From: Takakia lepidozioides
Taxonomy: Eukaryota > Plantae > Bryophyta
Assembly: GCA_030704615.1 (NCBI GenBank)
Contig: CM060732.1
Location: 28,706,001-28,770,000, forward strand
Reading direction: 5' to 3'
DNA: 64,000 nt
Position 1 is the first letter of the stretch, and every line of letters begins with the position of its first letter. The position numbers and the translations under genes are program-made. Shown here in pieces: positions 28,811 through 62,600 of this stretch. Below the pieces are notes generated by a model that ran no database searches, had not been told where the DNA came from, and saw only the letters and a list, made by a program, of their open reading frames with translations.

Positions 28811-29148
28811 ACAACGACGCATGGCGCGAGAGCGTACGCTCACGCAGGGAGTGACGTGGGGTGAGCGTACGCTCACGCCAGCTGACGTGGGCGTGAGCCT
28901 GCACACACGCTGACGTGGCGACGTGAGCGTCATGTCAGCACGCTGATGTGGCGGTAAATGATGACGTGGCACTGTCCGTCATCTGCCACGTCAGCATTAA
29001 CATGCGCCGCCGAAAAAATATAAAAGTTGCGATTGGTCATGGGAAGACCCTTCCTCCCTCCTCAAATAACAATGAGAGTTAGGATCATCTTCAAAAGATG
29101 ATTGTAGTGCATAGCGACAGCAAGACGTGTAGACTTCGAACGGTGCGC

Positions 29149-29874: not shown

Positions 29875-29876
29875 CT

Positions 29877-29888
29877 TGGTATCAGAGC
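29877..29888 (+). promoter_or_regulatory. Primer-binding site complementary to initiator tRNA-Met
   Basis: TGGTATCAGAGC two bases after the LTR end. Confidence 0.9.
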
Positions 29889-30003
29889 TTAGAGTTCAGT
29901 ACGCGATCGTCCTTGGGATTGGCCTCATCATGGGGTCGGGCAAGCCAAAGCGAAAGCGGAACGGCCCAAAAGATGATGATCCTGGTGAGCCCGATGGGGC
30001 GAC

Positions 30004-33000
30004 GTGTCACCGAGGCGGCCGTTTGAGGAAGCGATGCATGTTCCCGAAAACGAGGCCGCTCAAGAGCGGGAGGAATCCGAGGAGTCGAAGCCCGAGGAAT
30101 CCTTGAGAGCTCCGACAAACCAAGAGATGCCTCCCATGCCGGCAGCCTTTTGGGAAGGGTTGTTGGCGCAGTTTGGCGGGACGTTGAAAGACGTGTTGAA
30201 GGCGGCTAATGCCACTTCCACTAAGACAAAGTTTAAGGTGAAGCCTAACGAACCCGGCACCTTCGAGGGCGTCCAAAATCGGAAGGCACTCAACACCTGG
30301 CTCCTAGAGCTAGAACAGTACTTCCGGGCGGCCAAGTTGAGTGACGAGGATCGGGTGGAAGTGGCTCCCACCTATTTGAGGGGCTATGCTCAACAATGGT
30401 GGCAGAAACGCCTTCACGACCGAGGTCCAAGCCCGGAAACCTTGAACTGGAGTGGGTTCAATGAATTGATGAAGAGACAGTTTGTGCCCCTCAACGCGTC
30501 CTGGCTTGCCCGGACAAGATGAGGAATTTGAAGCAAACAGATGACATTCGGGGGTATGTCCAGGCTTTCAATGTGCTGTTGCTCGAAGTCGCGGACATGG
30601 CAGAACCAGAAATGGTCTTCAACTTTGTGGCGGGACTAGCCCCATGGGCCAGGCGGAAGTTGGAGGAGAAGCCACCCAAGACTTTGAACGAGGCAATTGA
30701 GAGGGCTGAATGTTTCTCCGATGTCCCTAAGGGTGAGAGACAAGGCCGTACGGAGCTGAACCACAAGAAGACCCGGCGGGAAGGTGACTCCTTCCGACCG
30801 GAAAAGAAGTGGGATAGGCCACGCGGCGACAATGGCACGTGGAAATCGAAGGGAGGGCCTTCACACGTCAAGGCGGCACCCGGTGCTTCGAAAGGAAAAA
30901 CGGGTGGAGCGGCTTATGGCGGACAGAAGGCGACCTTTGATGGAGTGTGTTTCAATTGTGGGGAGCCCGGGCACATGGCCAAAAAGTGCACGAAACCCCG
31001 GCAATTGAACATGACTCGGGCGACCGCAGAGCTGTCGGAAGATACCATTAGTCGCTTGGTGGAAGCGGTGGTCGCCAGGACTTGCAAGGTAGGCAAATAT
31101 TCTTGTGAGTTGTATCAGGAAACTGGCACATTGCGTAAAGGGAGTCACTTATTGTTCGTGGATGGGATAATATCCGGAACTAACGTGTCATTGTTGGTGG
31201 ACACAGGAGCGTCGCACTCCTTCATGACACCGGCAACGGCACAAAAGCTGGGACTCCCGACAACTGACGTAGGGGCCTCTATTGAGGTGCGTTCTGCCAA
31301 AGGAGAACCGCAATTGGCGACGAGGTTGGCGTGCGATGTTCCTCTTCAACTGGGGAGTTGGGAGGGACGTGAGAACTTCACCGTTTGCGAGATCGATGGA
31401 GTGGATCTCATTTTGGGGATGACATTTTTGAGCAAATCCGGAGCGGTCATAGATGGCCGCAAGAGGGTAGTCACGCTGCCATGTTGGAATGGTGGCGAGG
31501 TCTTACGAGTTTCGGAAACGCCCAAACCCGTGGGAGGGCGAATAAACCTTCTGTCAGCAAGGGAGTGGGCCATGGAGGAGGCACACGAGCCCCGGTTTTT
31601 GCTCTACATTAGAGAAGTGAAGGGAGAAGGCGATGGAGAGCCGAGCCCAGATTGGATCAAGGGGATTTTGGACAAATACCATGATGTGATGCTGGAGGAT
31701 TTGCCAAGCGGCTTGCCACCGCGAAGAGGAGTTGACCACAAGATTGAGGTGATACTGGGATCGGAACCGCCTGCCAAGGCGCCCTACCGGTTGAGCCACA
31801 GGGAGTTGGTCGAGTTGAAGACTCAGCTCAAGGATCTAATGTCAAAGGGGTACATCCGGCCGAGTAAGTCACCTTACGGAGCCCCGGTGCTATTTGCAGA
31901 CAAGAAGGATGGGACGCTGCGGATGTGTGTCGATTACAGGGCTCTGAATAAAGTGACTATAAAAAACCGGTACCCTTTGCCAAGGATCGACGACCTCTTC
32001 GATCGGTTGGCAGGAGCGAAGTATTTCAGCCGGATCGACTTGCGCTCCCGCTATCATCAAATTCGGGTGGCGGAAGGAGATGAGGAGAAGACCGCGTGCA
32101 GGACAAGGTATGGTTCATATGAGTTCTTGGTGATGCCTTTTGGGCTCACCAATGCACCAGCGACATTTAGCACGCTGATGAACAGCCTTTTCCAAGTGGT
32201 TGGATGACTTTGTGATCGTGTACATCGACGACATCTTGGTGTACTCGAAAACAAAGGAAGAGCACCTGGAGCACCTAAAAAGGGTGTTCCAAAAATTGCG
32301 AGAAGGGAAGCTGTATGCCAAAGCTTCAAAGTGCGAATTCGGGGTCACAAAAGTGGAGTTCCTGGGGCATGTGATTACACAGGATGGGATCAAAATGGAT
32401 GACAGAAAGGTGAGGGCGATCTTGGACTGGGAGCCTCCGACTTCGGTCCCAGGAGTGCGATCCTTCCTAGGACTCGCCTCCTATTACCGGAAGTATGTGA
32501 GAAATTTCGCCAAAATCGCGGGGCCGCTGTCAGACCTTCTGTGTAAATCTAAAATCTGGGCATGGAACACCTTTTGTGGCCAAGCTTTTGCTGAATTGAA
32601 GCAGCGGATGGCGGAAGCTCCAGTCTTGAAAATCCCGGAGTTCGATCGTCCATTTGAGATTCATACAGATGCGTCGGACTTCGCAATTGGGGGTGTACTT
32701 ATGCAAGATGGACATCCAGTGGCTTACGAAAGTAAGAAACTGAACGAAGTGGAGCGACGGTGGCCGACGCACGAAAAAAAGATGAAGGCGGTGGTGCATT
32801 GCCTTGAGCTTTGGCGCCACTATGTTGGTTCCAACCCAGTGAAGGTGTTCACGGACAATGTCACGGTGAAGTATTTTGCCACGCAGCCCAAGTTGTCCCC
32901 AAAACAACTTAGGTGGCAAGATACTTTGGCGGTGTTCGACGTGGATATCCAGTACAAACCGGGGCGAGACAACGTGGTGGCCGATGCTTTAAGTAGAAAG

Positions 33001-34489
33001 CAGCAGCTCTTGTTGGTGTACAAAGGTGAGACGGCGCTCCAAAGGAAGATCCGGAAGGCTTGCCGGAAGGATGAGCTGGCGAAGTCCGTGATACAGGACT
33101 TGAGGATGGGGGTTAAATCGCAGTTCCACTTGCAAAATGGACTGCTCCGGTATAAGCAAAAGCGTCTCTACGTGCCGAAGGGAGGGATCAGAGATAGCCT
33201 CTTGAGAGAATGCCATGATAGCCCGCTTGCGGGCCACGGCGGAGCCAAGCGCACTGCGGCACTCTTGAAGAAAGAGTATTTCTGGCCCAAACTGAGGGAG
33301 GAGGCAGAGGAGTATGTCAAGACATGCACCACATGCCAACAAAACCGGAGCGAGTACAAAAAGCAAGCGGGGCTGTTACAACCCTTGCCGATTCCGGAGG
33401 GGACTTGGGAAAGCGTCTCGATGGATTTCATGACTGCTATGCCGCTGTCAAAAGGATTCGATGCAATCTTGGTGGTGGTGGATAGGTTCAGTAAAATGGG
33501 CCATTTCATCCCCACCAAAGAGACGACAACGGCGCAGGAGACAGGGCGACTTTATTTCGCCCACGTCTTAAAACATCATGGAGTCCCGAAGGATATTGTC
33601 TCGGACCGCGACCCCAAAGTTTACGAGTAAATTTTGGAGGGCACTTTGGAAGAAGATGGGGACCAGGCTGAAGATGAGCACCGCCTTCCGACCTACGACC
33701 GATGGCCAAACAGAAAGAGTGAATTCCGTAGTAAAGCAGATCTTGCGGAATTACGTGTCGGCAGACCAAACAGACTGGGTGGAACACTTAGACGCGGCAG
33801 AGTTCTGTTATAATAAGATAGAACACTCCGCAACGGGAGTTTCCCCTTTCGTATTGGTCTATGGAAAAGCACCTCTGGTGCCGACAAGTTGGGCCGCCCG
33901 GGACGTTGAGGAACCGGCAGTAGCGGCGGTACTGGAAGAACGCGAGCGTTTGTTGAAGCTCGCAAAGTACAACATTGCCAAAGCTAGGAAACGGTATGAA
34001 AGGCAGGCGAATCGGAAGCGGAGGGAAGTGAAGTTTGAGGCAGGCACGGAGGTCTGGTTGAACATCAAGAATTTTCGACTACCTCCGGAAGTGAGTCCAA
34101 AGTTCGTACCTCCGTATGCGGGATCCTTTCGCATCCGGAAGGTTATGAATGAGGATGTGTATGAATTGGAGCTGCCGGCAAACAGCAAGGTGCATCCAGT
34201 ATTTCACGTCTCCCTTTTGAAGCCTTACTTCAAAGATGAAGCGCGTCCGAATCGGCATCAAGTGTTGCGTCCGCCACCTGTGCTATTGGATCATGAAAAT
34301 GAACTTGAGTACGAGGTGGAGGCAGTACTTAAGTCGAGGAGGTTCAAGAACCGAGAAACGGAGTATCTCGTCAAATGGAAGGGCTATCATCATGTGGAGG
34401 CATCTTGGGTGCGTGCCTCAGAAATGGGAAACGCATCCGAGGCGGTTGCAGTTTTCGAAGGGCGACCTCAAAAGCGGAAGAAGCGTTGA
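30004..34489 (+). pseudogene. gag-pol polyprotein split by frameshifts at ~30515, ~32200 and ~33620
   Basis: ORFs 30004-30522, 30519-32207, 32200-33630 and 33578-34489 carry consecutive Gag/PR/RT/RH/IN/chromodomain segments. Confidence 0.92.
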
Positions 34490-35347
34490 TGGGGACATCA
34501 ACCTTGGAGCGTGGGGGAGGAAATGCATGCTTAGCCCGGCTTAGCTAGCTTAGTAATCCGATTGCAAAAACTTGTATTGTACAAAACGTGCTATAAATGA
34601 AATGGCTTCCAAATGTTGTGCGTCCTATTTTGTTTGGAATGGTGATGCATGGTATGGTTGGCTAGTGTGTAGAATGCATGCTAGCTTATAAAAGTGGGAG
34701 AGGTAAATTGGGTTAATTGTGTGTTTGCGTAGTGCCGAAATTGGGTGACCCCCATCCAAGGGGCAAGGAAACTTGCGCCTTCTTTGGGAGTTCACGTGCT
34801 AGTGCGCACCTGGCGCGTGCGCGTACTATAACTGCGCTACCGAGGGGGTTGCCTTGTAGTGCGGGCTAACGCAGAAGCTACGTGCTTCTGTTCACGTACT
34901 ATAATCGTGTAGCCTCGGGACGAAGTCGTAGTGCGGCTTCGGCGTGTTCCCGTACCTCAGGCCAGCGTTCCAAGGCGGACCCAATTGTAGTGATTGGGGC
35001 GCACGGTTGGTTCAAGGTTATCTTCCTAGTCAAAGAGGGTTCCAGGGAACCCTTGCTCAAGGTGATGCCAAAAGCGGCATCATGAGCGGTCGCAAGCAAT
35101 GTTGTTGCAGTAAGGCGATTCGATCCTCGGGGAGGATCGTTCCTTGGCCTTGAAGTAGGCCAAGAAGAGTGCACTGGGAGGAGCTTGAGAGGCTCCACCC
35201 TTGGCCGGGACTTGGAGGAAGTCGGCCGAACTAGCTAGTGGAGAGTAGAGTCAAGTGTGGGGTTTGGTTCTTTGCCATGGGACGCCATGGTACGGAAACA
35301 AACTCCTTGATGTGGGACGCCACAACTTGGATGTTTGTTTATACAAA

Positions 35348-35682
35348 TGTGGAACCCCCGCGGACAGCTACAGAAGTATATATAGGGAGTAGTAACCCCG
35401 AGAACGGTGCAAGCCCGTTGGTGACCAAAAACTAGTGAGTAAGCGAGCGAGCCGGAAAGCGACCAAAGAGTGGGGAGCTGTTCCGGACTGCCATCTACCA
35501 AAGGGAATTCCACTAGGCCCAAATAGGTGGAGGGTCTTCGGGGGAGCGAAGGGGGACCGTTATGTCCCGGTGAGCAGCCGAAGCTCCAAGTTGGCCCGGC
35601 GGCCAGGTTGGGAGTCAGGCGCGCGCATCAAAGCGAGTAACTATGAATTGAAGGGGAGCTTATCGAAGTGAGGTGCGCGACA
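35348..35682 (+). repeat. 3' LTR segment homologous to the 5' LTR
   Basis: 335 bp with 4 substitutions versus 29540-29874 by manual comparison. Confidence 0.9.
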
Positions 35683-45314: not shown

Positions 45315-48300
45315 AATCCCTGGTGATGGCTCTGGGGCCTTTGACCCTGCCACTGAGTCATAGGTTGTCCAGAGTCCCCTCCAGTTGTCCCGCACCGCTA
45401 ACAAGTCCACGCTTTGCCATTTGAAGTCGTCCTGACCTGCTGTCGTTCCTATGCGGCCAATTGCTTTGTTGCAATATTTCATCGCTATACACGTCGCTTC
45501 CACCAATTGCCAAGCTCCTCGCCGTGTGTTCCTACTGGACTTGAAAGGCGGGAGAAAAGAGAGATGACAATCTAGGACTGGAACAGTCGTCTTATATTGT
45601 TTGAACAGGATTAACTTGCCGTTTCTGGTACCGAATTGGCAGCCTAATATGCTGTCGATGCAGCTTCCTACGGTCATCTTGACGCCAAAGTTTCTCTCCA
45701 TGGTCGTCTCAGACACTGTCTAATTTCCTACGTGCTTTACCAACGATTTCCAGACAACTAACAAACTAACATTTTTTGGCAGTACAATGCCGAAACCGCT
45801 TGTCTTATGATAAAAAAACGATCTGAAAAAAAAAGTGTACCAATATATGCATCTACATACCCTCAGCTGAATTTGCTTTGATTGAGTCCTGGATATGCTA
45901 GAGAGGTGGATGCAGTGATAGAGTATACTAGTGGGAGCTGCGACGTGTAGTTTGGTGCGAAACAGCGGTGTGATGTCGTAGAGAGGATGAGGGAGCGAGG
46001 GCTTGTGGCAAAGGCAGCTACCTTGGTGCGTTTGGCTGTTACTATATAGAGGGGTGGCGCCTTGTATCAACAGATAGTTTGTAATTGTCATGGGGACAGA
46101 TCCTTTATTGTAGAGCCAGTATGAAGAGTGATGAGTTTTAAGAGAGGTAGTTATGTGGTGAGGCAGGGATGGCTGATGCCCTGATTTTGTATGGGATAGA
46201 GGGTGTCGTGGGTTATTTTGGTGGCGGATAAGTATGAAGGAACTGGCAGGTGCATGGGTATAAAGAGACACCAAACGTGCGGGGGTAGAGGGTATATCTG
46301 CCGCTGGCATTGCCATTACGTATGGGAGGGAGGGATAAAGCCGTTTGGAGGGGGTGCAAATCTTGCAGATGTTGTTTATGGAGCTAACTGTGTTTTGGGG
46401 GTAAGCTGGATTGGTGGGGGTGTAGTAGAACTGTTGTGGTGTAATGGGGTGTAATGGAGGATTTAAGGGGGTATCATGATTTTGGCTGCATGGTGGCTGG
46501 AGGTTTGGATTAAGGTGCAAGTTTAATGTAAGTGGAGAGGCCAGGATATAATGGGCAGTGTGGGCTGTGTCAGGGGTGAATGTTGGGCCAGGTTTGGGGT
46601 TCATTGAGGGTTTGTGCATGTGGTGATTAACATCCAGTGATTTGGTGACTGGTGAGATGGGCCTTTGGGTGGTTCGCTGAGTAAGTGGGGGTGAATATTG
46701 CAGGGAGGGTTGAGGTTTCATTGATGAGCTCACCATATACAAGGAAGTCTTTGTTGTAATTTTAATGCTTTGTGGCAGGCCTTTAGGTGCAGGAGCACCT
46801 GTTGTGTTGACGTACGTGAGGTTATTTAGGGGGTACATATGTATGTCAACGTCTTGTATATGGGTGGGTATGGAGTATTGGATTATTAGTTGTGGAGTGC
46901 AATAGGGGGTGTTTGGGGGTATTTGTCTGGATGTTTCCAGATTGTGTATATCCCTAGTGCCAGATTTTGTAACTTGAAGAGATGTCTCAGTGGTTATAAT
47001 TGTGTGCAGTAAGGGTGAGTTTAATGGAAGTGTGCCACGTGAACAGTAGCAGATAATTTATCGGAGGCTTGGGTTGTGGCACTATTTTGAGTATATTGTA
47101 TATGATGTTTCAGAGATGAATGTGGCCAACTCAGATATTGGTGGATGGGGGGGACCCCCATATCCTTTACAGGATTAATTAAGAGTGTGGGGCTCACACC
47201 TAGCAGTGTGGTGCAAGATAGTGTGTTGAGATAGTGACGTAATTGTATCGATAATAGATAGTTGAACTGTGAGCAAGCAGAAGTATATGGGTGTGCCATC
47301 CAGCACCCCAGAGAATTGCGGGGGTGATATAGGATGGCCTTGGTGTGTTGCCAGAGTAAAGAACACAGGATACATAGCCCAGGGGGCGGGGGAGTACTTC
47401 TTTGTTTGTTATGAGTATACTTTGAGTGCCACCGGGGGTGGCCTTTACGGTAGTGTGATTGTAAGGTCTGTCACCGCTTGGCCCTGGCTGGGCCAAGGGA
47501 AAGTTGTGGTTACAGTATATGACTGTGTTGCCTCTGTGGTGGGTGTCCGTCGTATCCTGTTGTGGTCTTGACATGTGGAGGGGGAGTCGTCTGTGAGGTG
47601 TCACTGCAGGGCAACCATATAGTGATGAGTCATATGAAATTCTGTGGGCTACTGCAGCAGAACGCAAGGAGTAATGAAGAGGACCAAGATGCCCAGTTGT
47701 GTAGCCATTTACAACAGGGTATAGCGATTGGGAGAGGTAGGGGATAGGGTCCACACCTGATATCTGACTTGTTGGGGGGTAGTGGTAGGCTGCAGCACGG
47801 GTGTCGAAGGCCACTTCGCTGTAGACTCTATATCGGCACTGTGGGAGAGAGGGAGAGGAGATTGAGTTATCTGATCAACAGAGGGAGAGGTGTAGAGGCA
47901 GACCTCCTGTGGAGGTGAGTTATGACAGGGTCATGACTTGCTTTATGGGTGTAGTGGCGAAGGTGCCCTGTATGGTGGGATCTCTTGGGTTTGTGACTGG
48001 ATCTGTGCCCCTGCCTGCAATTGACCTGCGAGTGAACATCAGAACCTAGCCTCTGGGCCATTATATGAAACCCATATTGATAGTATGATACCACTGTTAG
48101 GGAGAAGAGGGAGCTGTGTGAGAGGGGGGTAGTGTGTGGCAGGTAGGAGTTTGTGATTTGAGAGGTAGAGGAGATTGCGTATGAATTTTAGAGGTAAGCA
48201 TTCGAGATAGAGTGGAGCTGGAGTGATAACTAGGATGCAATTGCCCTAGTTGGATTGGGTCCATAATCTGAGAGAGATAGAGGAGTGGGGTACCTGAGGG

Positions 48301-50204
48301 GGCTCGATACAAGTTGTTTGCATGGGTGTACCTTAAGTGGGTGATTCGGATTTTCAGACTGCACAAGATGGGCCCACTTGCCTTGGTAACATGGAGTTGT
48401 ACGGGGGCAGCTGCGGATCCCTTTCCCTGCCATTGAGTACAGAGGGAATGGTTAGTACACCACTGACAGTTCAAAGGCCCTAGATGGGGTGTGCGCAGAT
48501 TACTTATGGACGCAGCAGCAAGGGAAGACAGTATTGAATGGGCACTGGTACACTTGAATGGGCATCCATGGGTGACTCTGGGTGAAATTAAGTGAGCATA
48601 GAATCTGGGGAAGGTGGGCATAAGAGTGATAGAAGTGGGGATGAGTAAATGTTATGTGGTTATGGGTTATAGCTAAATTGTTGGGCGAGAGAGCAGAGAT
48701 TGCCTTGGGGGTGATGTATAGTCTTTTGAAATGTAATGAGTAGTTCATTGTATAGTAGCTTCGCCAGAGTAGAGTAGAGGATATGTGGTGACGGAGTGCA
48801 GAAGTAAGAGGGAAAATAGAAGAAGGAAAAGAGCTGTGAGTGTTGGGGGGGTGATTGAGAGATCGTAGACTGTGTTTTAGCTTACCTGGTGGTAGTACAT
48901 GTCTAGAGTGGAGTGAAGTGAAATGGGGGCATCTGTGGCACATTCTGGGCAGCAGATGTTGTGATGAGTGAGTGTTTGGCTGTCTTTTCGTACCTGTGCT
49001 GTTTTTGTGCAGAAAGCTCAGCTTACATAAATTGGAATGGCCGTTTGCCAGTCACGTCTGCTGGCTACGCTGTCAATCTGGCATCGGAGCTGCTTAGTGC
49101 ACTGCCTCTTGTTCGTAGGGTGCCGATTGTGCCTGGCATACTGCACAGCGGGAGTGAGCTGGGGCCGCTGTTGATGGCGGCCACGTGACCAAAGCGGCTT
49201 GTCATAGTTCCATAGATCAGTTGTAGAGGCTCTCGACATAGAGGGATTGGGGATTCCCCCAGGCAGGCTCCACTTTGTCCATCTTACTGCATTTAGCGTA
49301 TTGAGGGGGTGGGGTCCTGCTGGTGGATTGCTGACCAGTACCGAGTAGCATACAAGGAGTTTTCTGTAAAATCTTGTAGCCCCAGGCTGACATTATTCGA
49401 TGTGATCCATGGAAGACAGCGCTTGATTGTCGATCGAGACGTTTGTGTCCTTGTCCATCTTGCCACATGCTTGTGTTTGGGGATCTGGGGGACCATCTTG
49501 ACGGTATTCATTCCCCTGGTGGTAACCTTTGGGTGCCATATCGCACTCTTCTGCACGTAGGAACATGCTTGGGAGTCTGTAATAATAAGAAGACTGATGA
49601 GTGCCCAAATAGAGAGTATGATCCGGCTGGGTGCCTGCGCACCCGCATGCGTTCGCCTGTAAGGGTGTCGTTCACGCCATCTGTTGCAGGCAGATCTTGT
49701 GCAAAGTGCATATTTGCATACGGCTAGAAATGAGATAAACGCAAACACAATGCTGTTGACATACGAACTCCAGAACTTACGATTTGTGACTCGTTTCTCC
49801 TTCCATGCCGTAGTTTGTGGAAGAGGGTGGTCAATCTGTGAGATCGAGAACTGATCCAGGCTAGAGAGAAGGGGAGAAAGTGTGGCGGCTGGGGAGCACG
49901 CCGCAGCCCCGCTAGTCATGGATAAGATGGTGGGAGCGCTAACTGGAGGAGAAAGTGTGATAAGAAAGAAGCAAAGATAGCGGAACCCTAACAAGATAGT
50001 CATGGTTAAGGGAATAGTTAGGCTGCTACAGAACATCCTAGGGGGAGGCGGAGCTCCGCCTCCCCGCGTCTCAAATCAAATTGTGGACAGGAATGTCTTA
50101 GCAGGCAAAATATATGTTTACCACACTAATTTTTAGCTCCCCAAATTAGTGTGGCCCATAATTTATCCTTTGGGCGGTAAATAAAATAAAATAAAAAAAA
50201 ATAA

Positions 50205-50874: not shown

Positions 50875-51103
50875 TGTGACATTGTGCTATATCTGATGAG
50901 GAAGATATGGATGTCTGCATTTCCGTTCTGTAGCAAGGTGCCACATTGCAACTCCATTTCTTTTGTATGTAGAGTGCTTTGTGGCTGTCGTGCGCATACA
51001 TATCGCTACACACACAATCGCTGTCCAAAACCACACAACACATGTGCACACCAAACATTAGTCTATCACTAGTGCACCACTAGGCTGCCACTAGTCCATC
51101 ACA
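50875..51103 (-). repeat. Putative 3' LTR of the methyltransferase-bearing Gypsy element
   Basis: Begins TGTGAT directly after the PPT and ends GTCACA (TGTGA/TCACA inverted termini); ~229 bp. Confidence 0.55.
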
Positions 51104-51362
51104 ATCGCCCCCCTAGCTGGCGATTAGGCTCTCTAAGTCCAGGTAGCCACAAAATGTGATAGTGGCCATAGCCTCACTAAGTCCTCCACCACTGTCCCTA
51201 CTACACTCAAACTCGATAGATCAAGAAGTCGGGTACAATAGTTGCCTCATCGTTAGTCGCCGTCTTGGAACCTGTGAACTTGAGCCTGAGATCTCGGGTA
51301 TTGACTCCTATGAGCTTGGCCTCCCATGTCTTGTTAGCTGCCACTAGTCATATCCACTGCCA

Positions 51363-51510
51363 CTATCCCAAGCAGTGTGGACATAACCAATCTCCATCAG
51401 GAACCCTCTCAAGAGGTGGTATTAAGCATCCCATGTGTCAACCTCTTGATCATCAATCACACACCAACATAGTGGCGGCACCACGAGTATGCCCACATAG
51501 CATGCAACGC
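51363..51510 (-). pseudogene. PHD finger at the integrase C-terminus
   Basis: RCMLCG...[30 protein letters not shown] is the C4-H-C3 PHD pattern with three in-frame stops. Confidence 0.85.
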
Positions 51511-54369
51511 AACCCTGCAGGTACCACTGCAAGGTTGGGATCTATCCTCCCATCCACATATGGAAGGTGACATGACGCACAATTACGCACATGGTCCTTC
51601 CATACCATACCATCTCGACCCTCCAGAATCAACACTCTTGAAGGCAACACCTCTCTGATCCTTAGAATCACACGTCCTGCTGTGACATCCAAGGTCGTAG
51701 GCGCTGTCTGCTGTAGATACACATAGTCCCCAGTGTGGAAACGCCGAACACCTGACCGATATCCCCCTCCACGTATAGTAGCATACCTCAATGTGTCTTG
51801 GTGTTGGGAAATAGCAAGGTTCTCAAACGCCATAGGCATGACCTTCTTGAACAACTCTGCCCGCTGGGCACATGCTTGTGTCTACACATCCGGATCATCA
51901 AGGTTGAGGACTACTGCAGCCTCTCTGCGAATAAACGCAGGCAAATCTGGCTCTCGGCCAAAGAGAATGAAATATGGTGAGAAAGAGGCAAGTGATGCTT
52001 GCTTGCTAAACGTGTAGCCCATGGCTAACCAAGGTACCTGAAGATCCTAATCTCCTAAGTGTCCCTTTTGCAAGCCATACTTGCGCAAACCCCTCTTCAC
52101 CGTCTGCACCACTCTATCTGCCAAGCCATCGGCCCCAAGATGATCCCGAGAAGTGGTACGGTGGTCTATCAAGGCTTATCACACAAAGCCTGAAACTCCC
52201 CCAAGAACTCTCTCCCTTGGTCCGTGAGTACCTCAGCTGGAGCACCAAATCGGCTAAGCACACGATCCACGATGCACGAATGCATACGCAACCCCCTTAC
52301 TAGCCTTGTCAGGCAATGGAACCAACTCAATCCACTTGGAGAAGTGCTCCACTATTACCAACACATATCTGTGGTGGCGCATCGTCAGTGACAACGGCCC
52401 TGCGAAGTCAAGACTCCACCTGTAGCCCAATCCCATAATGGGTAAGGGATGCAACTGTGGTGTAGGGGCGTTGAATGAAGCACGCACCCTGTCACACACC
52501 ATGCCCTAGCCACAAACTGTTGCACCTCTGTGTGCATACCACGCCACCAATACTGCCCCTACAGTAGACTATGAGTGCGTTGCACTCCAAAATGCCCCAA
52601 CTCCTCATGGACATGCCGCACTAACCGTGCACGTTGTGTTGGGTGAGGCACAATTTTCACCCGACCATCCTCCCACACTCGAAGTAGGTGTATCCCCTCC
52701 CACTTGAACCTCTTGGCTCGTTGCAGGATCTGATCCCTCTCTTTGGCAGTCACACTAGCTGTCGTGTCTCCAGTGCGGAGGTAGTCCAACACAACTGAAT
52801 CCTCATGTATATCTCTGGCACCACCTGGCTCATCACTAGCCTCAGGGTCCTCAGACACTCCGTCTACAGTCATCCTTGTTGTAGGTCCAACCTGACCTCC
52901 CGATGCCAAGATATACAAAAAAACAGATGTATGCCATCCCGACACCATCTCCTCGTTCGTCTCACCATGCCACCGAGCTCCAATGTCATCTAGATGGGCG
53001 CCGAGGTCAACCTCGCCTTGAGCTCCTGAAAAGCTCGCTCTTGCTCATCTTCCCTCTGCCACTCCTGGTCTACCTTGGTCAGCTTAAATCCCTTGACAAA
53101 CCGTCTATAGTAGTTTGCCAACCCCATGAAAGCTCGAACTCGGCTCACATCCGTGGGGTGTGGAATCTGTGCAATGACCTCTACCTTAGTCTGCTGCACC
53201 CCCAATCCTCCAGGATATATCATGTGACCCAGATACTCAATCTGGTTGTGGAAGAACTTGCACTTCCCCGGATGTAATTTCAATCTGTGCGTTTTCAAGC
53301 GCTCAAACACTACCTGAAGGTGTCTCTCGTGCTCTTCCACCGTAGCACTAAAGATGATGATGTCATTTATGTAGCCGAGCAAAGTCCCCCCCTGCTAGAA
53401 TCCTGTCCATGACTCTCTGGAACTCTGCAGGAGCGTTCTTAAGCCCGAATGGTAAGAACCGCCACTGATATAGGCAATCATTCCCGTGCTCATTGACCCC
53501 CCATAATGCCGTCTTCTGCTTGTCCGCCTCCTTGATCAGCAACTGGTGATATCCATACCGCAAGTCCAAAGTGCTAAAGACCTTGGCATGCCTGATGACA
53601 TCAAAGATCTCCTCCGGTGTGGGCATGGCTACTTATCGGACTTGGTATGACGATTTACAGGCCGGTAGTCACCGCACATACGTCTCTCCGTCCAATTGCC
53701 ATAGACATCTTTCTTGGCTGGCATCAACGTGGCTGAAGCATACTCTCCACCAGAGAGCTCCACCAAACTAGCCTCCCAGAGATCTTGAGTCCTCATCTGA
53801 ATCAAAGACCTCTCCATGTCACTGTATCTATAGGGTCTCCGAAAGATTGGCGTGTCCGTGGCCAACGCAATACAAATTTCCTGACCCTTCAGTGCTCCCA
53901 AGTCCTTCAAACTGAAGGCAAAGCAATTCATGTAAGCCCTTAGGAACCGCCGTATACGTCGTCTCTCTCCTCCAGTGATAATGGGTCCAATGTCAGGCTC
54001 CCAATTGTCCTCCATAACTGCAATTTTAAGTCCAGCAGACTTAGAGGTAGGAGACGCATCCCGTGGTTGCTATGCCACAACCTCATGAGCAGTACTCCTG
54101 CCTGCTCTCAGTCAATGACAAGGCCTCATCCTGCCCCATCATCTCATCCTTGAGGACCTCCTCGACCCGGGAAGAATCCCCAATCTTATCCATCACAGCC
54201 GCCTTGGCTGCCAACTCCCTCTGAACTTCGAGCACCTCCCACGTGTGCCATGGATGTCTGCACCCCGTGGTTCTCACCGGCTCGCCCCCACTCACTGCCT
54301 GTACCGTCTCGGTAGGCAGAGAGACCATCAAGGGAAGTGCACTCTGCACTCTACGTTGCTCAGCTATAG

Positions 54370-55320
54370 CCAAGCTGATAATCCAGGTCAAGCAATTGAG
54401 ATCCATTGCTTGCCCCAACACCTGACGACGTGATGCCTCAGTAAGAGAAGGCACCGCCATGGTCCCAGTGGAAAAACCCATAGTCTGCTCTCGCTCGTCG
54501 GCATTAGGCTCCACTAACTGCTGTAACTAAGCATCCCACAGGAGGCCAGGTTCACTATCCCGGAAATCATGCGATCCTGGGAAGCTGAGCAGTGTAGGTA
54601 GTGCTGCTTGTGCTTGACCCACCTTGTTGACCATTGCCAAAGGCGAACGGTCATCGTGTCTTACATGTTGAGACTGCCTCCCTGTGTCCAAAATGCTATC
54701 CACTGTGAGGTGTGCTGGTCGCTGCACCCCATCAAATGCACGATTGAGCAGTGCGGGTGATATCAAGTTAGTCCACCATAACCGTGGACGATGAGCCCGT
54801 GACCCCACTGCAGCTGCATCCATCAACATTGCTGCTGACCAAACCACGACCGGACTTGATGCACACTGGCCATCACCCTAACCCGAGAATTGCCCAACAG
54901 TGGCATATTCTCCAATATGTATGCTGGAGATACAGCTTGATGAAGCTGTAAGTGGCGCAAAACCCGCACCATCTCCCAAAACAAATCCGACCTCGAGTCT
55001 CGCAATCCATTGCCATGCCTGGCTGATGAATGCCCTTGGCAGGGCCAATCTGCCACTACCAGATCAATGGAGCCAACCCGCTCCAAATCCTGCGCCCCCA
55101 GCAACGAAATGTCTGCTGCTGATATCCACTAACTGCAGACACCGGCAATAACTCAGGGTACTGCTGCACCAACTGAGCAACATGACGGAGTGAGACGCGT
55201 CGTGCAGTTTTATCCTTCTCTATATACAAATAACGCCGTACTCGTACACCTGCCTGTAGAACAGCAGCCAATCCGGTGTTGATCCTTCCCCAACAAGTCT
55301 AGAAGGCAAATGCCTTCATC
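54370..55320 (-). pseudogene. DNMT3-like cytosine-5 DNA methyltransferase domain within pol
   Basis: Motifs in canonical order: I (ICLLDLLG/RINTGL), II (RYLYIEKD), III-IV (DISLLG...DLVVADWPCQGHS), VI (YILENM), VIII (DAAAVGSRAHRPRLWWTNL), IX-X (EREQTMGF...RRQVLGQAMDLN). Split by frameshifts and stops. Confidence 0.9.
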
Positions 55321-58300
55321 CGGATACTGCCACACAATCGGTGTGGTATCCAATGGTGACAACTGAGGTGGTCCTGGTGCAATCCCCACACTGTCCTCCT
55401 CTCCTGACAGTACAAAAGCCTCTAACCAAGCTTATTGCACCCATCGATCAGCATCCCACTGCAAATCCTTGCTCGGTCAAGCCCCACAATGGAGTTTGAG
55501 CAACCATGGCAGACAACTCCGCCATACCATATATGTCATCCTGCTCTCCCGGAGGTGACATATCCTCTGAGTGAGCGTTGTCCTCAAGCAACTCTCCAGG
55601 CCAACTCACTGCAGCTGTGAATGCTGCCAGTGTCGGCATCTTGCCTCGGTGGGCAACCGCAACTCCTCCTATGAATGTCACAGGGAGCTGTATATGCCAG
55701 CCCTCCCCTGACTCCCATCCAGGCCTATAGGAAGCTGACTCCTCCAAAAATCCAGGGTGAAGCCCATGGGGTACAACACTGCCCCACCAACAATGACATC
55801 GTACGAGACCGCGTCTGTTACAATGGCCTTGGCTCTCATCACTGAGCCATCTGTAGGATGATCCAGCTGTAGTCTGATAGCCAACTCACGCCGTGTCATG
55901 CCCCGAGCCGGCTCTGATCCTCCCAGAGATGTCTGTATCTGGAAAGGGCACGGCTCCATATCCGCCTCCGTGAGGCCCAAGCCTGCAATAGCATCAACCC
56001 ACCATCAATGGTTGAGCTCCCGAGTCCAACAAGACTCGCACTGGCCGTACCCTCTTGCTTGCCGGTCCACTCAAATAGAAAATACCATCCTGGTTGTCTA
56101 ACATGACAACTCCAGGTGTCACCATGGTGCGATAAATGGCTGGCCTAGCTGGCAACTCCGCCAACCTGGCAGCTGCAACTTGCCATGGCGCTGCCGTGGC
56201 AGTCTTGACCCTCATATCCGAGGATCCCTCCAGCACTACACCTCCCACTATCTCCGCAGAAGATGAAGTAACTTCTCCACTCTCATAAAGTGTAGCTGCC
56301 AGCCTGAACATCTCAGCTGGTCTTACCCCCGGGGTCGCAATCATGACAGCCGAGAACAATGGAGCCTGACACACAGTTGTGGCCGCCCCCACCAGCACAT
56401 TAGCTGCCATAGCCTTGGCAACATCAGGTAGTGGTGCTGCCCGTGTAGCTCTCCCCAATGGCAACCTCCGCCTTGGTAACAGTCGGGCGAGAACTAGGTG
56501 CCATGGACGGCGTCGACACTGTCTCCGCCAATGTGAATGACTGAGGAAGCCTGGTCTGACGGCTTGTCTCCCACGCTGTGGATCCAACTCCACCTCCGCA
56601 CCCCATGGCTTAGGAACTCGTGCTGCTCCTCGAGTCATTGCCGCAACTGACTCCATTTGCACTAGTGGTAGTCCTGCCCCACACATAGTGGTAGTGGTAG
56701 TGCTGCCCCGCACATGAATCCCATGCCTCCCATCTCTCCTCCCTCAGGAGCAGGAGGTGGACCATCCGGCCTTGGAGCCGGTACCACCTGAGCTGTGGCC
56801 ATGGCAGCGAGCCTCTGCTCTCTGCTGAAGCGGTTGATGCCTGTCATGACCTCCGCATCCTGGCCATGTGAGTTTGCCCTTGGCCCGCACCTCGTGCTTG
56901 ACCACCTCATCCTCCCTGGGCTCCTCCATCTCGCCCCCGACCACCATTGTTCCCTTGGAACTGGCCTGGGCGCAACTTAAGATGCAAACCATAGCATTGG
57001 GGCTCTCCATGCCCGTACTTGCCACAATGCTCACACTGCAACTGTGCCTGTGCAAACCATTGCCTCCCTCTGGGCAATCCTTCTTGACATGGGGTCCTCC
57101 ACATGTCCAGCATACCACATCCGCTCGTTGTTGGCTAGCAAATGAAGGGAGAGACTCATGTATCTGAGGTCCTCTCTGCCCTTCCCTGGGCTTCACCTAA
57201 GCCCCCTTGTTACCTTGAGCACGTTGATGTAGTGGCTGGCTAGGAGCACCATTACCCCGTGGTGCCTCTTTGGCAAATCCCACCATGACCACTCGTTCCT
57301 CCACCATGTTGAGCTCTATCCGCTTTGCCAACAAAAACACATTTGTTAAGGTGAGTTGGGCCCTTGTAGGAGAATTGCATCCCGCACCCTTCTCCTCAGC
57401 TCCTTGTCCAATATCCCATACCAGAATTGGACTGCCTGAGCCTCCGTAACCCATTGGGTTACATTTATCAAGCGCCTCATGCGAGTGAAAGCCTCCCTCA
57501 GGCTCTTAGTAGGCTTCCTCTGGAACTCTTGCAAGATCCTCAACTTCTCTGTTCTCACCCCTTAGTAGTCCCTTCTCAACTCTTCGAAGAACTCCACAAC
57601 AGGGTTGAAGGCAGACACCGCCACTAGTGCTGGTGCAGCAGTAGCTTGGGTAGACATAGTAGTTGCTGTACCACTAGTCCAACTATTGCTCGTGGAAGCT
57701 GCTGGTGCAGCTGCCGGTGTGGCTGCTGCCCTTGTGTCTCTAGTGATGGAGACATAGTCGGGTGACCAGTACATCCTCCACTCCTCGATCTCAACATCGT
57801 GCCCCCGCCTAAACTCATGGTAATCATCCATGGGCGGCCCCTCAAGGTGCTGAAACAGCTCCTTCCATGCCCATAAAGGCGTAAACAGTTGTGGATTGCG
57901 CATTTGCTGCAAGTCACACCAACTATCAAACTTTTGAATGAAATCATCCAACTCGATGGTGCCCACCACCCCAGAGTACATTCGTGGCCCCTTGGTAGTT
58001 CCATACATCTCCTCCATTGTGTCCCACAACAATGACAAGGAAACAACTTGCACCACCGGTGTGAGTCCTCCTGATTCACAATCCGAATCAGAACCTTCCG
58101 TAGAAGACACAGGATGTGAAGGTGGCCTAAACCGCACACCTTGTCTCGTATACCCGCTAGTATCGCTAGTGCTCATACCGACACTTTCCCCAACAACTAA
58201 TGGCACCTCTGTGTTGACAAACTGGCACTCAACCGGTCATGAACCTGTCTGTCTCCCCCTCTCCACAAGGTAACCAGGTAGAGAACCTGATGCGGCTTAT

Positions 58301-59279
58301 GGTTTGGAATACTAGGTTCCTAACATGGCATGCACCTGCACTTGCATCTACCGTAGGCACTCCCATGGTTGGCTGGTCATCACCTCCAACCTCACCACAG
58401 GAGAAACAAAGATGGTCTGATTGGTCATCAACCCAGCTTCATCATCAACAGCATGCTCTAGGGTTGGATCGGCGATCAAGCCCGAGTCAACCACCTATAA
58501 AATCAAGCGCCCACACAAAACTAGCATGGCGCACAATCAAGCATGCAGGTGTAGAGGGGATCCAAACACAAGAATGAAAACAACAACTCCCCCACACCAA
58601 AAACAACTCCACAGTGTCGCTCCTGCAAGGACACCCCAGCCCAAACCCGGACTGACTCTTGCCTCCACCTACGGAAATGTCTCGGCCTACAGAGAAGGTG
58701 GGAAGCTATGAGGAAGGGAAGCTAAAGCAATGCCTATCCCCAGCATGCTCTCAGCCCAATACCCTCTTTTTTTCTCTCTTCTCTCACTTGCATGACCATG
58801 AGAGCATCCTGTAGACACTCCTCAAACTGCCCTCCACGAGCTCATGAAACTTGGCCTCCAAGGCCCCATGCAAGCCTCCACAGGGTCCGCCAGTGCCTCC
58901 TTACGTCCACCAGCCATTCCTCCGAATGGAACCACCTCAGGAAACCACGCCATTTATTGAAGGTTAAAAAATGGAGCAAATAGAGGTACATATAGGCCCC
59001 AACAACATTTTGTCCAAAAGAATTACCTGCAGGCTGGTCTCCCCCATAGTTAAGAATTGGGCTGAAAACCCGAAAAGATTACCTGCAGGGAAATAATCCC
59101 TTTTGTTAAAACGCAACAGGGAGGCAATTCCAACTTTTCTGCCGGATCAACTAGCTCAAAACCGTTGTTCTTCATAGCCTAGCCTCCCCATCAAGGTCCC
59201 ACGAAACGAGTGAATTTATTTATTTATTTATTTTATTTTTTTATTTTTATTTTTTCACTCTAGCTGTTCGCTGCCTGCC

Positions 59280-59600
59280 GTCGCTCCAACCGCCACGACT
59301 TCTCACAGCCCGCCCTAGGCGCTCGTTGGCCACGGGCTGCCTCGTGATACCCCTTGGTACCACGCCCACGAGCCTTCACGACCCGCCATTCCCACGATCT
59401 GGTCACCGTGCCCACCCGTGGTGTCCGCACCACGGCTTTCCACGGTCATGGTCAACGGTCACGGCCTGGGCTCGTGGTATCTCGTGATACCGCCCCCACG
59501 GCCCATCTCGGCCACTATTCCCTACGTTCCCTGGAACTCCCCACGAGTTCTCCTACGTTCCCGAGGTATTCTAGGGCGTTCCCACACGTTCCCGGGCTCT
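59280..59600. repeat. GC-rich cluster of short CCACG/CGTGG motifs
   Basis: More than ten (C/T)CACG or CGTG(G/A) motifs in ~320 bp, resembling subterminal repeats of a DNA transposon. Confidence 0.5.
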
Positions 59601-62600
59601 CCCCGAGCTGGGGTTTGCTCCTGCACCTACTGCCGTTGAGCTATGGCTTCTGCGGAGCCATCAGCCCCGTCGCCCTGCATTCCTGAGCTCTCACGACCCA
59701 CTAGAAGTGCCCTTAACTCAACAAGCAAGCTATATGCTGCCCAACAAGCTCCATTTCTTCATGAAGCTCACAAAAACGAATCTGAAAATACACACATTTA
59801 TAACCTTGGTGTACCTGCAGTTCTACTGCACATTCCCTGGCTCTAGGACGCCTTGTTGCTGCCCTTCCAGCCCCCGCTCTTGCCACTCCAAGAGCCCTTG
59901 TGCTAGAGTTTCAGATGGAAACTTCCAACTCAAATACATGCTTCACAGGTGCACTGATTTGCACACAAGATGCACCAGCCCTCTCTCTTCATTCATACCT
60001 CTTCATGAGCTTGGAGCTGAATCTCCCAACAGGCTGCGATGCATCCCCTCGCAGCTCCACTATTCGGCTGCTCCTCATCTATCCGCAACAACTAGTTTCG
60101 GGCAGAAATACCTGGAGCTGATCATATCATCCACAACTGCAACACGCTAGCTTCCCATGCGCAGCCCACATTCCTTCAACTCCTTAACTCGGCCTGCAGC
60201 TGAAGAAGACGACCACCAGTTCGCCCACTCATGGCCAGCATCTTCTCCGCTTCACAGTAGAAGCCCAAACTTGGTTGCCATACTGTTGAGCTATGCAACA
60301 CTGACAGCCTCTCTATCCATTGCAAACCTGCAACCTGTTCGCCTTCGCATTCTATCCGCTTTGGATAGGCTCATGCACGGATCCCTGCACTCTAGGCTGA
60401 ACCGCTTTTCATGATCTGAAAACACAAGTGCTACAACTAACTCGAACTTGGCACTCACAGACTCGAGCTGATCTTTCTCGAGTGATAAAGAAAGGAATGA
60501 TGCAAGCACACAAGCTCTCTCAAACTCACATACTTGCACATGAAAATATCACTCATATATTAAGTCGAGCCAAGTGCACCCCACGCAATGGGGAATCCAC
60601 ACTACGGCGCCATAGCTAGACGCGGTGAGGCTCAACTCGAGAAAGATGAGCCCACCGCGATTTGCCGTGAAGATAACAACGCCAGGTGCCCAAACATGTA
60701 TTGGCCCCTGGATTGACACTTGGGTCAATCCCAAATGTCAATATATAAAAGAACGTATGCTAGAATTGGAGATTGAAATGCAGGAGGTGCTTTATAACAG
60801 GCCCTCCAGTCAGTCACTTGTTGCCAACTTATCTCAAAACCCGTCTGAAATATTGGCCTAATGAGGTGTGCTCTCTGTGGTCTGAAGGAGCCGAGGTATT
60901 TTTACCAAAGCTGATTTCCAGTGGAATTGTCACCCATCATCTTGATCTCTCCATGTATCCTCACCTCTGATGTTCTAAAGTCGACCAACCATGTCCACTC
61001 TGAAAGTCAGAGCCAAGAGTGGCAACAAAGATGAAAACTTTCGGGAGTTCAAGCATAGCTTTGCAATTGACGGTGGTGAAGTCAGAGGACATGCACGGGG
61101 TTGAAGCACAAATGGCAGCAGGATGGCGAATGCAATCCGCCGCAAAATGTGTTTCTGTTTCTTAGCAGTTTGATAATTTGATTGCCAAACAATCGCTGCG
61201 TGATATCAACAAGGATGTTGTGGAGGTACTTTTGCGTTGATTTTACCTCATGGCTACAGCTTGTGGGCTCTCTGATGATTGTCTATGTCAACCGATAGAT
61301 GCAAGATTCCAAGTTCGGTTCCTGTGATGTTCAACGATGTTGGAGTGCAAGAAGCTCGGCTGTAGGATCAATGAACTAGAGTTTGGCACTGCGAATGTGA
61401 GGGCCTAGGATGCGAAGAACTGTCTTCAGGAATAAAAGATCATGCATGATTCAGAACGTGGGGAATGGATGTTTCTTACACCTGTTTGCAATTTCTTAGG
61501 CACTGTGATGCGAGGTGCTCGGAATGTTTTGCAGGGGAAGGAAAATGATATCTTATTCATGTTAGGGGAATTGAAGTGAAGCACTGCATGTGTCTGCAGG
61601 TCTTTATGGGCACTGCAGGTCTCAGCCAGGGTAGTGGTGGGGTTGGCCATTGTTGGCTTTGCCCTTTGCTATGGCCGGCGAAGAAAGCCCCGTTGGTTAT
61701 GAGACTGTGCATAGATTTGTACATACTTCTTGGTAGCAGTAGTGATGGCACGATAAGGCATGTCTCATAGGCCAGTTGCAATTTATTTAGATGGTGAGCT
61801 TGGAGAAAGTACATGAGATAACATCAAAGCTGTTTCTCCATCTGTTGGTGTATGGTTCCAATTAGCCATTGGATGCCATGCAGTCTAGTTCGCAATTCTT
61901 AATATAGTTTGTAATCCTCTGCTTGGTCTGGGGTTGCACTCACAGCATTATGGTGCCCAGTGCCCAGTGCTTCTTTCTCCACTAATTTCTCGATGCGCAT
62001 TCACCAATGGAGGAACATGCGGTCTGTTGCTCACCTGAAATCGCACAAAAACTCAATCAACACGCTAGAAACCGTAGGGTCAGTGAGAGAGAGGGGGACT
62101 ATAAATTTGGATGGGAGTAACAACTGCACAAAATAGATTCTTTTCAAGATAGCAAACTGCCTTGTCAAACCTTTTCTGCCAAGAGCAATACACAATTTTT
62201 GGGAAACCACATACACATCTGTGTGAGTCAGAGAGGAAAAACAGAGAGAGTGCACAAAGGGACCTTTCCCTGGACACGCAACCATCGAGACCTTGCAACA
62301 AACCGGTGTTGGCTCCTGCATTTAGTGCTAACTCCTAAAACACTAGACAGATTTTGCAAATGGAAATTTACAAATGTTCTTCAACTTGCACTGCCAAGAA
62401 ATGGCACACATCAGCTGCTCTTGAAGAATGAACTGCAGATCCAACAGTCAGGTTGAAGAGAGCATCTACAAGCACAACCCACCCACCAGGAATTCAATTG
62501 GGGTACTTTGTTCAATTTAGGGAGAGGACTGGCAAATGTACCTGGCGCAATAGCCAGCGTAGGGATTCTGGCAAAAAAAACAAACAAAAGTGCTTGCAGA

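Follow-up and report, generated by a model that had tools for sequence, protein, structure and literature searches.

A decayed Gypsy-type retroelement with a DNMT3-like cytosine methyltransferase in Takakia lepidozioides

The element and its decay

The stretch of DNA analysed here, 64,000 nucleotides (nt) of contig CM060732.1 of Takakia lepidozioides (positions 28,706,001 to 28,770,000), is called the window below, and coordinates are positions in it unless another sequence is named. On its minus strand, from ~58.2 to 51.4 kb, a listing of open reading frames (ORFs) and a three-frame translation reveal a decayed coding region of the Ty3/Gypsy type. Its domains follow in the order gag, CCHC, protease (PR), C5 cytosine methyltransferase, reverse transcriptase (RT), integrase (IN) and PHD finger, the RNase H (RH) domain having been deleted. 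The element is very probably a dead copy, truncated at its 3' end, of a retroelement of the Gypsy-DNMT3 kind that has a high copy number in bryophytes. A preliminary description of this DNA had placed a set of C5 methyltransferase motifs on the same strand as the Gypsy protease and RT and between them, and had proposed a search with the Pfam profile PF00145 (DNA_methylase). That profile matches a 93-residue ORF piece at 55104-54823 (E=3e-9, 37 bits against a cut-off of 22), and tblastn with the relative P0169 recovers the domain in four pieces in three frames (55359-55288, 55283-55092, 55113-54874 and 54826-54353) with a joint E of 3e-79 and one stop inside the last piece, so that the motif set stands where it had been placed. 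The methyltransferase lies on the strand of the protease and RT, and nothing indicates that it was inserted separately. The features of the element, from its 5' to its 3' side, are as follows.

58786..60823, minus strand: perhaps more of the 5' leader and the left repeat A1, uncertain (G+C skew, one weak 22-nt match)
58207..58785, minus strand: 5' leader upstream of gag (three short matches collinear with the leader of the Marchantia element L013)
57346..58206, minus strand: gag-like region, broken (ORFs 58206-57562 and 57558-57346; Retrotrans_gag weak, E=0.043)
56964..57121, minus strand: two CCHC zinc knuckles in different frames (zf-CCHC E=0.05 in ORF 57196-56744)
55702..56060, minus strand: aspartic protease, DSG active site near 56030, frame break at ~55743
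54284..55359, minus strand: DNMT3-like C5 cytosine methyltransferase, dead (PF00145 and tblastn with P0169)
54064..54072, minus strand: in-frame UAG (54072-54070) followed by CAA CCA, the leaky context of tobacco mosaic virus type (type I), between methyltransferase and RT
52993..54063, minus strand: RT with three stops and a frame break at ~53629 (RVT_1 E=5.5e-12 and 6.7e-11)
52986..52992, minus strand: junction of the RNase H deletion, ~400 bp gone (comparison with L002, L005 ORF2 and a contig of run X8)
51700..52985, minus strand: integrase with H2C2 zinc domain, rve core and C-terminal region, frame breaks at ~52504 and ~52175, many stops
51363..51506, minus strand: PHD finger (51506-51372; Cys4-His-Cys3 pattern, broken by three stops) and end of ORF2 (stop 51365-51363)
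51017..51362, minus strand: 3' non-coding tail, truncated ahead of the B1-A2-B2 repeats (matches to the L013 tail)

The assignments were made with two intact relatives, P0169 and ORF2 of L005, as tblastn and alignment queries. In the gag region, residues 53-280 of P0169 align to 58023-57364 with one stop, and residues 389-412 align to the zinc-knuckle segment 57035-56964. Residues 709-803 match the protease at 55980-55702 with 42% identity, and an LLDSGA stretch is found at the end of ORF 56713-55994. RVT_1 matches lie at 53626-53363 and 53382-52990, and residues 4-365 of L005 ORF2 align to the RT region with 46% identity. Integrase is recognized by Integrase_H2C2 (E=1.4e-3) and rve (E=5e-4 and 4e-3) over 52948-52169, and residues 658-1030 of L005 ORF2 align from integrase to PHD finger (52499-51372, 62% identity, 9 stops). 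The Pfam PHD profile itself is matched in intact relatives, namely at residues 2300-2344 of P0174 (E=6e-11) and in ORF2 of L005-L007; no chromodomain was matched at the integrase C-terminus of any relative scanned, the PHD finger standing in its place. The Ty3/Gypsy order of gag-CCHC, aspartic protease, RT, RNase H and DDE integrase is thus present, RNase H being found only in relatives.

The borders of 50875 and 58780 given in the preliminary description find no support. At the 3' side, similarity to other copies ends near 51017, before which 55 contigs of the source-species run X1 diverge; the tail matches to L013 are collinear and lie at 51261-51230 and 51148-51098 (E=5e-7). The 5' side is longer than had been stated. 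Matches to the L013 leader are found at 58785-58767 and 58572-58554 (E=0.16 each) and at 58413-58373 (E=7e-6, alone significant), the G+C skew sign of the element is kept up to ~61000, and the Marchantia A repeat gives a single weak 22-nt match at 60640-60619 (E=0.05). Judged from these matches, the copy probably spans ~51.0 to 60.8 kb, its 5' limit being uncertain. Just past the truncated 3' end, the G+C skew is strongly positive (0.3-0.54) at 46000-49000, which suggests a different sequence unit, and a perfect 24-nt palindrome lies at 50042-50065.

The preliminary description had also called the copy dead on account of frameshifts, stops and an RNase H deletion, and it is so in each respect. 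Frame breaks occur near 55743 in the protease, 54838 and 54105 in the methyltransferase and its tail, 53629 in the RT, and 52504 and 52175 in the integrase; they coincide with 1- or 2-base differences from most other copies, as in the case of the indel at 55743. The methyltransferase domain has at least three frame breaks and one in-frame stop. At ~52990, ~137 codons (residues 366-501) of L005 ORF2 are absent; in L002, positions 8432-8852 face window positions 52986-52972, and in record 27 of run X8, a 2.2-kb contig, 407 extra letters stand between 52990 and 52992. Changes of the C-to-T type are in excess: at 251 sites a C or G of other copies is T or A in the window, and at 143 sites the reverse is seen. 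The CpG observed/expected ratio of the window copy is 0.50 as compared to 0.77-0.80 in intact copies. This pattern of decay is usual for a methylated dead copy.

The methyltransferase domain and the family that carries it

In spite of the breaks, the methyltransferase motifs can be read in order: I (split between frames), IV with PCQ, VI, VIII (AHRPRLWWTNL), IX and X. Across the family the catalytic motifs are invariant or nearly so. At sites that do not vary in an alignment (A1) of 14 arrangement-A sequences, the window has substitutions: DW in place of GW ahead of the catalytic Cys, ENM in place of ENV, and EQTMGF in place of ERAMGF. PF00145 matches the relatives with E values of 1e-7 to 1e-17. 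The class of the enzyme was determined by searching all sequences of the PDB with a profile built from 30 domains of the family (alignment A2). The profile matches DNMT3A, 3B and 3C best (E=8e-29 to 2e-26, ~100 bits, the best ~104), followed by DRM (E=3e-15, 59 bits, half of the domain aligned), M.HhaI (E=9e-12, 48 bits) and DNMT2 (E=1e-8, 37 bits); DNMT1 and chromomethylase are not listed at E<0.01 in that search. The alignment with DNMT3A is collinear over motifs I, IV-VIII and IX-X, including the target-recognition region, and thus shows the non-permuted order. DRM aligns over no more than half of the domain, as would be expected of a permuted enzyme. The closest structural matches are of the same kind. 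An AlphaFold2 model of the Calypogeia fissa domain, which belongs to the closest relative without interruptions and is 66% identical to that of the window, has a predicted local distance difference test (pLDDT) score of 94 and a predicted template-modelling (pTM) score of 0.92, and the best 50 PDB matches listed by Foldseek are all DNMT3A, B or C (E=4e-20 to 9e-17). The template-modelling score, by target, is mostly 0.77-0.85 for chains of the catalytic domain, and the best fit is to DNMT3-DNA complexes. Profile and modelled fold therefore support a DNMT3-like enzyme of canonical motif order, as had been proposed from the motifs.

An exhaustive protein search with the 93-residue piece gave 323 matches. 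Annotated fragments with 54-75% identity come from the named species Calypogeia fissa, Sphagnum jensenii, S. balticum, Marchantia polymorpha and M. paleacea; in C. fissa, an uninterrupted 780-residue ORF joins protease and methyltransferase. The order (CCHC-)PR-DNMT-RT-RH-IN is found in the long proteins P0057, P0152 and P0173, and likewise in P0174, which has the PHD finger in addition. The Closterium proteins P0118 and P0074 each carry part of the same order, and the closest among the long relatives, P0168-P0172 at ~50% identity, have the composition gag-PR-DNMT. Two-ORF elements are represented by L005, L006, L007 and L011. The layout is thus common to Calypogeia, Marchantia, Sphagnum, Closterium and dozens of metagenome elements, all of which have the methyltransferase, whose presence in other copies had been put forward as a test of the preliminary description. 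By these comparisons the methyltransferase is a stable part of the family and not a one-off capture.

In M. polymorpha, the gene models MARPO_0008s0049, MARPO_0204s0011 and MARPO_0020s0163, annotated as hypothetical proteins, correspond to gag-(PR)-DNMT ORFs of this family. Each of them has canonical motifs I, IV, VI, VIII and IX, and motif X has two substitutions in MARPO_0204s0011. Marchantia models with PF00145 such as MARPO_0008s0049 are therefore to be read as transposon ORFs, not as host methyltransferase genes.

In T. lepidozioides itself, the element is present in many pieces. When contigs of four public runs were aligned to window positions 51000-56999 at an identity of at least 80%, run X1 from the source species contributed 51,801 contig pieces, which cover all 30 bins including those of the methyltransferase. 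Record 27 of run X8, a run with the same organism label as those in which the sequence is best represented, covers integrase, RNase H and RT and reaches into the methyltransferase, with 93% identity to the window. This 2.2-kb contig was considered as evidence of transcription and set aside: it is no proof, the run being only guessed to be RNA and none of the listed runs that contain the sequence being recorded as RNA.

A tree of 94 methyltransferase domains groups the window and the C. fissa copy as sisters (support 100); the broken domain entered the tree piecewise, with gaps at the breaks, and the comparisons use natural sequences. Selection was estimated by the NG86 method from three intact elements of three different samples. 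These closer elements were used because the window and the liverwort and moss copies are only 66-70% identical in DNA, so that synonymous sites are saturated. The ratio of nonsynonymous to synonymous substitution rates (dN/dS) is 0.095-0.11 for the methyltransferase, 0.02-0.07 for the protease, 0.14-0.26 for gag and ~0.05 for ORF2. The measurement, which the preliminary description had called for, gives ~0.10 for the domain and shows, from these sequences, strong purifying selection on the methyltransferase.

The family has two domain orders. Among matches of at least 1000 residues, ~45 have (PR-)RT-RH-DNMT-IN and ~25 have PR-DNMT(-RT-RH-IN), as in the window. The preliminary description had recommended comparing the methyltransferase phylogeny with that of the RT; in each tree one branch divides the two orders (support 100 and 99, respectively), and within the window's group the methyltransferase and RT distances correlate (rho 0.71). 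Since the trees agree and the distances correlate, the enzyme has long travelled with its RT. The position of the methyltransferase may have changed once, or the domain may have been taken up twice very early. The integrase PHD finger is present in members of both orders.

The RT-RH-DNMT-IN lineage, the larger of the two, includes P0136, P0158, P0094, P0199 and ~40 more, many with a C-terminal PHD finger. P0199 (MNEG_11595), from the chlorophyte Monoraphidium neglectum, is a PHD-bearing member, and P0120 has a weak Tudor-like match. In P0077, P0116 and P0137, a related C5 methyltransferase is joined to a Dam-like adenine methyltransferase, and P0116 has an RT as well. Their C5 domain groups on the window's side of the tree, and the proteins are similar to the DAM-bearing retroelements described in a 2026 preprint; they may be of the SymbioDIRS sort.

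The stop between the two open reading frames and the termini

The preliminary description had the methyltransferase inside pol, as part of one polyprotein. It does lie within the coding region of the element, but in ten copies a UAG divides that region into gag-PR-MTase (MTase, methyltransferase) and RT-RH-IN-PHD. In L005, the gag-PR-DNMT ORF (1096-5118) and the RT-RH-IN-PHD ORF (5131-8262) are in one frame with a single UAG between them, and ORF1 and ORF2 are likewise in one frame in L006, L007 and L011. A Marchantia gene model on L012 ends exactly at the UAG. The stops and the codons following them are listed below, in the coordinates of each sequence.

Window: 54072-54070, minus strand, in frame with RT, CAA CCA
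C. fissa (L004): 10874, CAA UCA
Marchantia L008, L012 and L013: 11210, 11672 and 13142, CAA CCA
L005: 5116-5118, CAG UCA
L006: 4606-4608, CAA CCA
L007: 4459-4461, CAG UUA
L011: 6000-6002, CAA UCA
Sphagnum (L009): 19198, CAA CCC, in a decayed copy

The stop is UAG in all ten copies at the matching position of the linker, and CARYYA follows in nine of them; in the 128 kb of the two strands of the window, TAGCARYYA occurs only 5 times. The second codon after the UAG varies in the amino acid it specifies (Ser, Pro or Leu), and its pyrimidine-pyrimidine-A pattern is kept. That the codons vary yet CAR-YYA stays points to selection on the RNA. UAG-CARYYA is the type I read-through signal of tobamoviruses (PMC5382211), and we infer programmed read-through at this site. 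L002 was rejected for this comparison, an unrelated 640-bp insert between its methyltransferase and RT masking the stop region.

The element had also been called a retrotransposon with long terminal repeats (LTRs). That it is a Gypsy-type retroelement holds, but there is no LTR pair in the window, and two Marchantia relatives have split direct repeats instead. In the window, no LTR pair or other terminal repeats rose above shuffled controls in a repeat search, in self-BLAST with words of 11 and 9, or in an alignment of the upstream with the downstream side. The left-end motif of the Marchantia copies was not matched there with up to 3 mismatches allowed, and neither a B nor an A repeat was found downstream of the 3' tail. 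As for a primer site complementary to initiator tRNA, the sole exact match, at 29877, belongs to another element, and no tRNA genes were found. Terminal repeats were not found in the metagenome contigs L001 and L005-L007 or around the Sphagnum copy either; L001 and L005-L007 are short-read contigs that probably end inside repeats.

The termini are best seen in the Marchantia elements L012 and L013, which are 94-97% identical to each other. They consist of A1 (296 bp), a leader of ~2.5-3 kb, the coding region, B1 (112 bp), GC, A2 and B2, the A copies being 93-98% and the B copies 98-100% identical. The outer ends are of the TG...CA type (TGTCA...GACA), and the elements are flanked by 4-bp target duplications (AATT, ATTT). 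The internal joint of B1 and A2 is the palindrome GACAGCTGTC, which resembles a stored end-to-end junction. That the copy in the window is probably cut off before B1 would explain why such repeats are missing there. A DIRS-like A...B-A-B arrangement of repeats has been stated for KnitGypsy-Dnmt3 of Klebsormidium nitens (PMC5890265).

Some relatives are rearranged. L013 (M. polymorpha KZ772692.1) has a 1-kb tandem duplication, 96.6% identical, at 11269-13269 within the methyltransferase region. In L003 (ENA ERZ25067493 ctg159469_5x_c, 1-18357), the P0174 element is present as 2.2 head-to-tail units of 8262 bp with 99.8% identity, and the single unit contains no repeat. A circular or tandem form is conceivable, the name of the contig having the ending _c, as is an effect of assembling split repeats.

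Known systems and possible roles

Gypsy-DNMT3 elements were published for K. nitens by de Mendoza et al. (2018; PMC5890265), whose survey included seven embryophytes, with no liverwort or Sphagnum among them, and "streptophytes (Gypsy-DNMT3)" are cited in a 2026 preprint. The preliminary description knew of no described land-plant family; full-text literature searches gave none either, nor any mention of the Marchantia gene models. The element is thus a land-plant member of a published kind, and the novelty is in host range and organisation, not in principle. Like the present family, KnitGypsy-Dnmt3 has a streptophyte host, a Gypsy-type pol with a non-permuted DNMT3-like domain in the coding region, DIRS-like A...B-A-B repeats together with Gypsy domains as in the Marchantia copies, and evidence of purifying selection (Ka/Ks <0.2 there, ~0.10 here). 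It differs in that the present hosts are land plants (liverworts and Sphagnum), and, compared by description, in that the main text of the paper mentions neither a PHD finger nor a stop between DNMT and RT. SymbioDIRS-Dnmt3 of dinoflagellates is also a retroelement with a DNMT3-like domain and an A-coding-B-A-B layout, and two of its domains methylate CG de novo in yeast (PMC5890265); however, it has a tyrosine recombinase instead of a DDE integrase and belongs to another class of retroelements.

The wider comparisons are with single parts of the element. Animal DNMT3A, 3B and 3C give the best profile and fold matches and share the motif order I-X, with similar motifs VIII (AHR.R..W.NL) and IX-X, but identity is ~20%, and the domain of the element lacks PWWP and ADD and is part of a retroelement polyprotein. 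DRM2 is a C5 methyltransferase of the wider DNMT3 group; unlike the domain of the element, it is circularly permuted. In tobamoviruses with the type I stop (UAG CARYYA), and in gammaretroviruses with gag-UAG-pol, an in-frame UAG also parts an abundant upstream product from a rarer one on the replicase side (PMC5382211). The differences are that here protease and methyltransferase are upstream of the UAG and that read-through is predicted. Chromoviruses likewise have a chromatin-reader domain fused to the C-terminus of the integrase; it is a chromodomain, whereas the present element has a PHD finger, plus a methyltransferase and atypical termini.

From these comparisons, the following scheme can be proposed for intact members. 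The layout, as read from intact and near-intact relatives, is A1, a leader of 2.5-3 kb, ORF1 (gag-CCHC-protease-MTase), UAG-CARYYA, ORF2 (RT-RNase H-DDE integrase-PHD) and B1-A2-B2. Most ribosomes would stop at the UAG and make Gag-PR-MTase in bulk, RT-RH-IN-PHD being made only through read-through. The methyltransferase would then be produced alongside Gag, released by the element's own protease, and could mark the element's own new cDNA or a fresh insertion, as was proposed for the algal relatives. The PHD finger of the integrase would read histone H3 tails and so choose or hold chromatin sites. By analogy, methylation of the new cDNA or insertion is the likeliest role, to which we would give slightly less than even odds. 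The window copy itself can carry out none of the proposed steps because of its frame breaks, its many stops and the loss of RNase H.

Several points weigh against this account. The Klebsormidium domain gave no methylation in yeast, a result its authors called inconclusive (PMC5890265), and no Gypsy-DNMT3 enzyme is known to be active. The putative place of the methyltransferase within the DNMT3 clade, and its probable kinship with KnitGypsy-Dnmt3, are drawn from profile, fold and repeat structure; host DNMT3, DRM and K. nitens proteins were not returned by the word-index or exhaustive protein searches, in which the mid-sized matches were element fragments. The fully intact elements come from metagenome or Logan contigs, and the copies examined in named land plants are all partly broken. 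Read-through is deduced from sequence context alone, and the stop is not universal, since the P0174 and P0152 lineages have the same domain order in one continuous ORF.

Other explanations differ in how much of the evidence they can accommodate. If a host DNMT3 gene or pseudogene had landed in this single copy, as a one-off capture or nested insertion, the frame breaks that flank the domain and the lack of element borders or LTRs framing the region in the window would be in keeping with it; yet the domain occupies the corresponding position in C. fissa, Marchantia, Sphagnum, Closterium and dozens of metagenome elements, its tree is concordant with that of the RT, its dN/dS is ~0.10, and a contig of the source species joins RT to methyltransferase, so that we give such an event next to no credence. 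The UAG poses a separate question. It is improbable, in our judgement, that it is an inherited defect, or that ORF2 is reached by splicing or re-initiation rather than by programmed read-through. Related lineages do use one ORF, and the Sphagnum codons are one letter off the consensus, but the UAG is shared by ten copies from liverworts, one moss and four lineages known from metagenomes. In four elements nothing else interrupts ORF1 or ORF2, both being under purifying selection, and the amino acid after the stop changes under a constant CAR-YYA.

The remaining alternatives concern the substrate. The conserved domain might serve for something other than DNA methylation: its substrate could be RNA, for instance the transcript of the element itself, or it could be a structural or binding module within the Gag-PR product. 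The yeast result with the Klebsormidium domain would fit, RNA methylation has been raised for DNMTs borne by long interspersed nuclear elements (PMC5890265), and a position in the Gag-side ORF puts the enzyme near packaged RNA. However, the motifs for DNA C5 methylation are all invariant or nearly so, the alignment with DNMT3A extends over the whole domain, with the target-recognition region and motifs IX-X included, the fold is closest to DNMT3-DNA complexes, and the related dinoflagellate DIRS-DNMT3 domains methylate CG in yeast (PMC5890265), which makes a role of this kind rather unlikely. Alternatively, the enzyme could act on host chromatin together with the PHD finger of the integrase, marking or making heterochromatin at targets or blunting silencing, so that new copies persist in safe places. 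The PHD finger stands where related Gypsy elements have a targeting chromodomain, DNMT and PHD are both kept in both domain orders, and copies in named genomes are depleted of CpG and hence methylated. Nevertheless, methyltransferase and PHD are in different ORFs across the stop and would be joined only in the rare read-through protein before its cleavage, and ordinary host methylation explains the CpG decay equally well; we see this as a possibility, but a doubtful one.

Retroelements that carry a methyltransferase invert the usual picture, in which the host methylates the transposon. Their record has so far been limited to algae in which manipulation is difficult, and in Klebsormidium the activity of the enzyme could not be shown. 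The present family is conserved and of high copy number in liverworts and peat mosses, and its M. polymorpha copies are near-intact and apparently young (repeats 93-100% identical). As genetics and methylome tools are routine in Marchantia, the question of how a transposon benefits when it methylates DNA becomes directly testable; the UAG-CARYYA stop, which leaves the enzyme on the Gag side, and the DIRS-like split repeats with their palindromic internal junction offer experimental handles. A bolder combination may be put forward for the young and very abundant bryophyte family, M. polymorpha included: an active DNMT3-type enzyme made in Gag-like amounts through a leaky UAG, permuted (circle-junction-like) ends of integration, and 5-methylcytosine on its own cDNA or on host chromatin that adds measurably to the methylome, or else a DNMT3 seeded into or exchanged with the host. 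All of this would be a good deal to expect, and we hold it to be unlikely.

The window has other repeats. At 29540-35682 on the plus strand lies a young LTR retrotransposon without methyltransferase, whose 335-bp LTRs (29540-29874 and 35348-35682) are 98.8% identical; it has an exact initiator-tRNA primer site at 29877-29888 and a Gypsy-type pol at ~30858-34171. A third Gypsy-type pol remnant (RT, RNase H and integrase) at 18221-20541 on the minus strand is 27-45% identical to the same query proteins. A cluster of dispersed and tandem repeats with 70-95% identity occupies 24281-28811 and includes a 166-bp palindromic match at 24281-24446. Finally, 4696-4925 and 9185-9414 form an inverted repeat of ~230 bp with 83% identity, 4.3 kb apart, which may represent the terminal inverted repeats of a DNA transposon.

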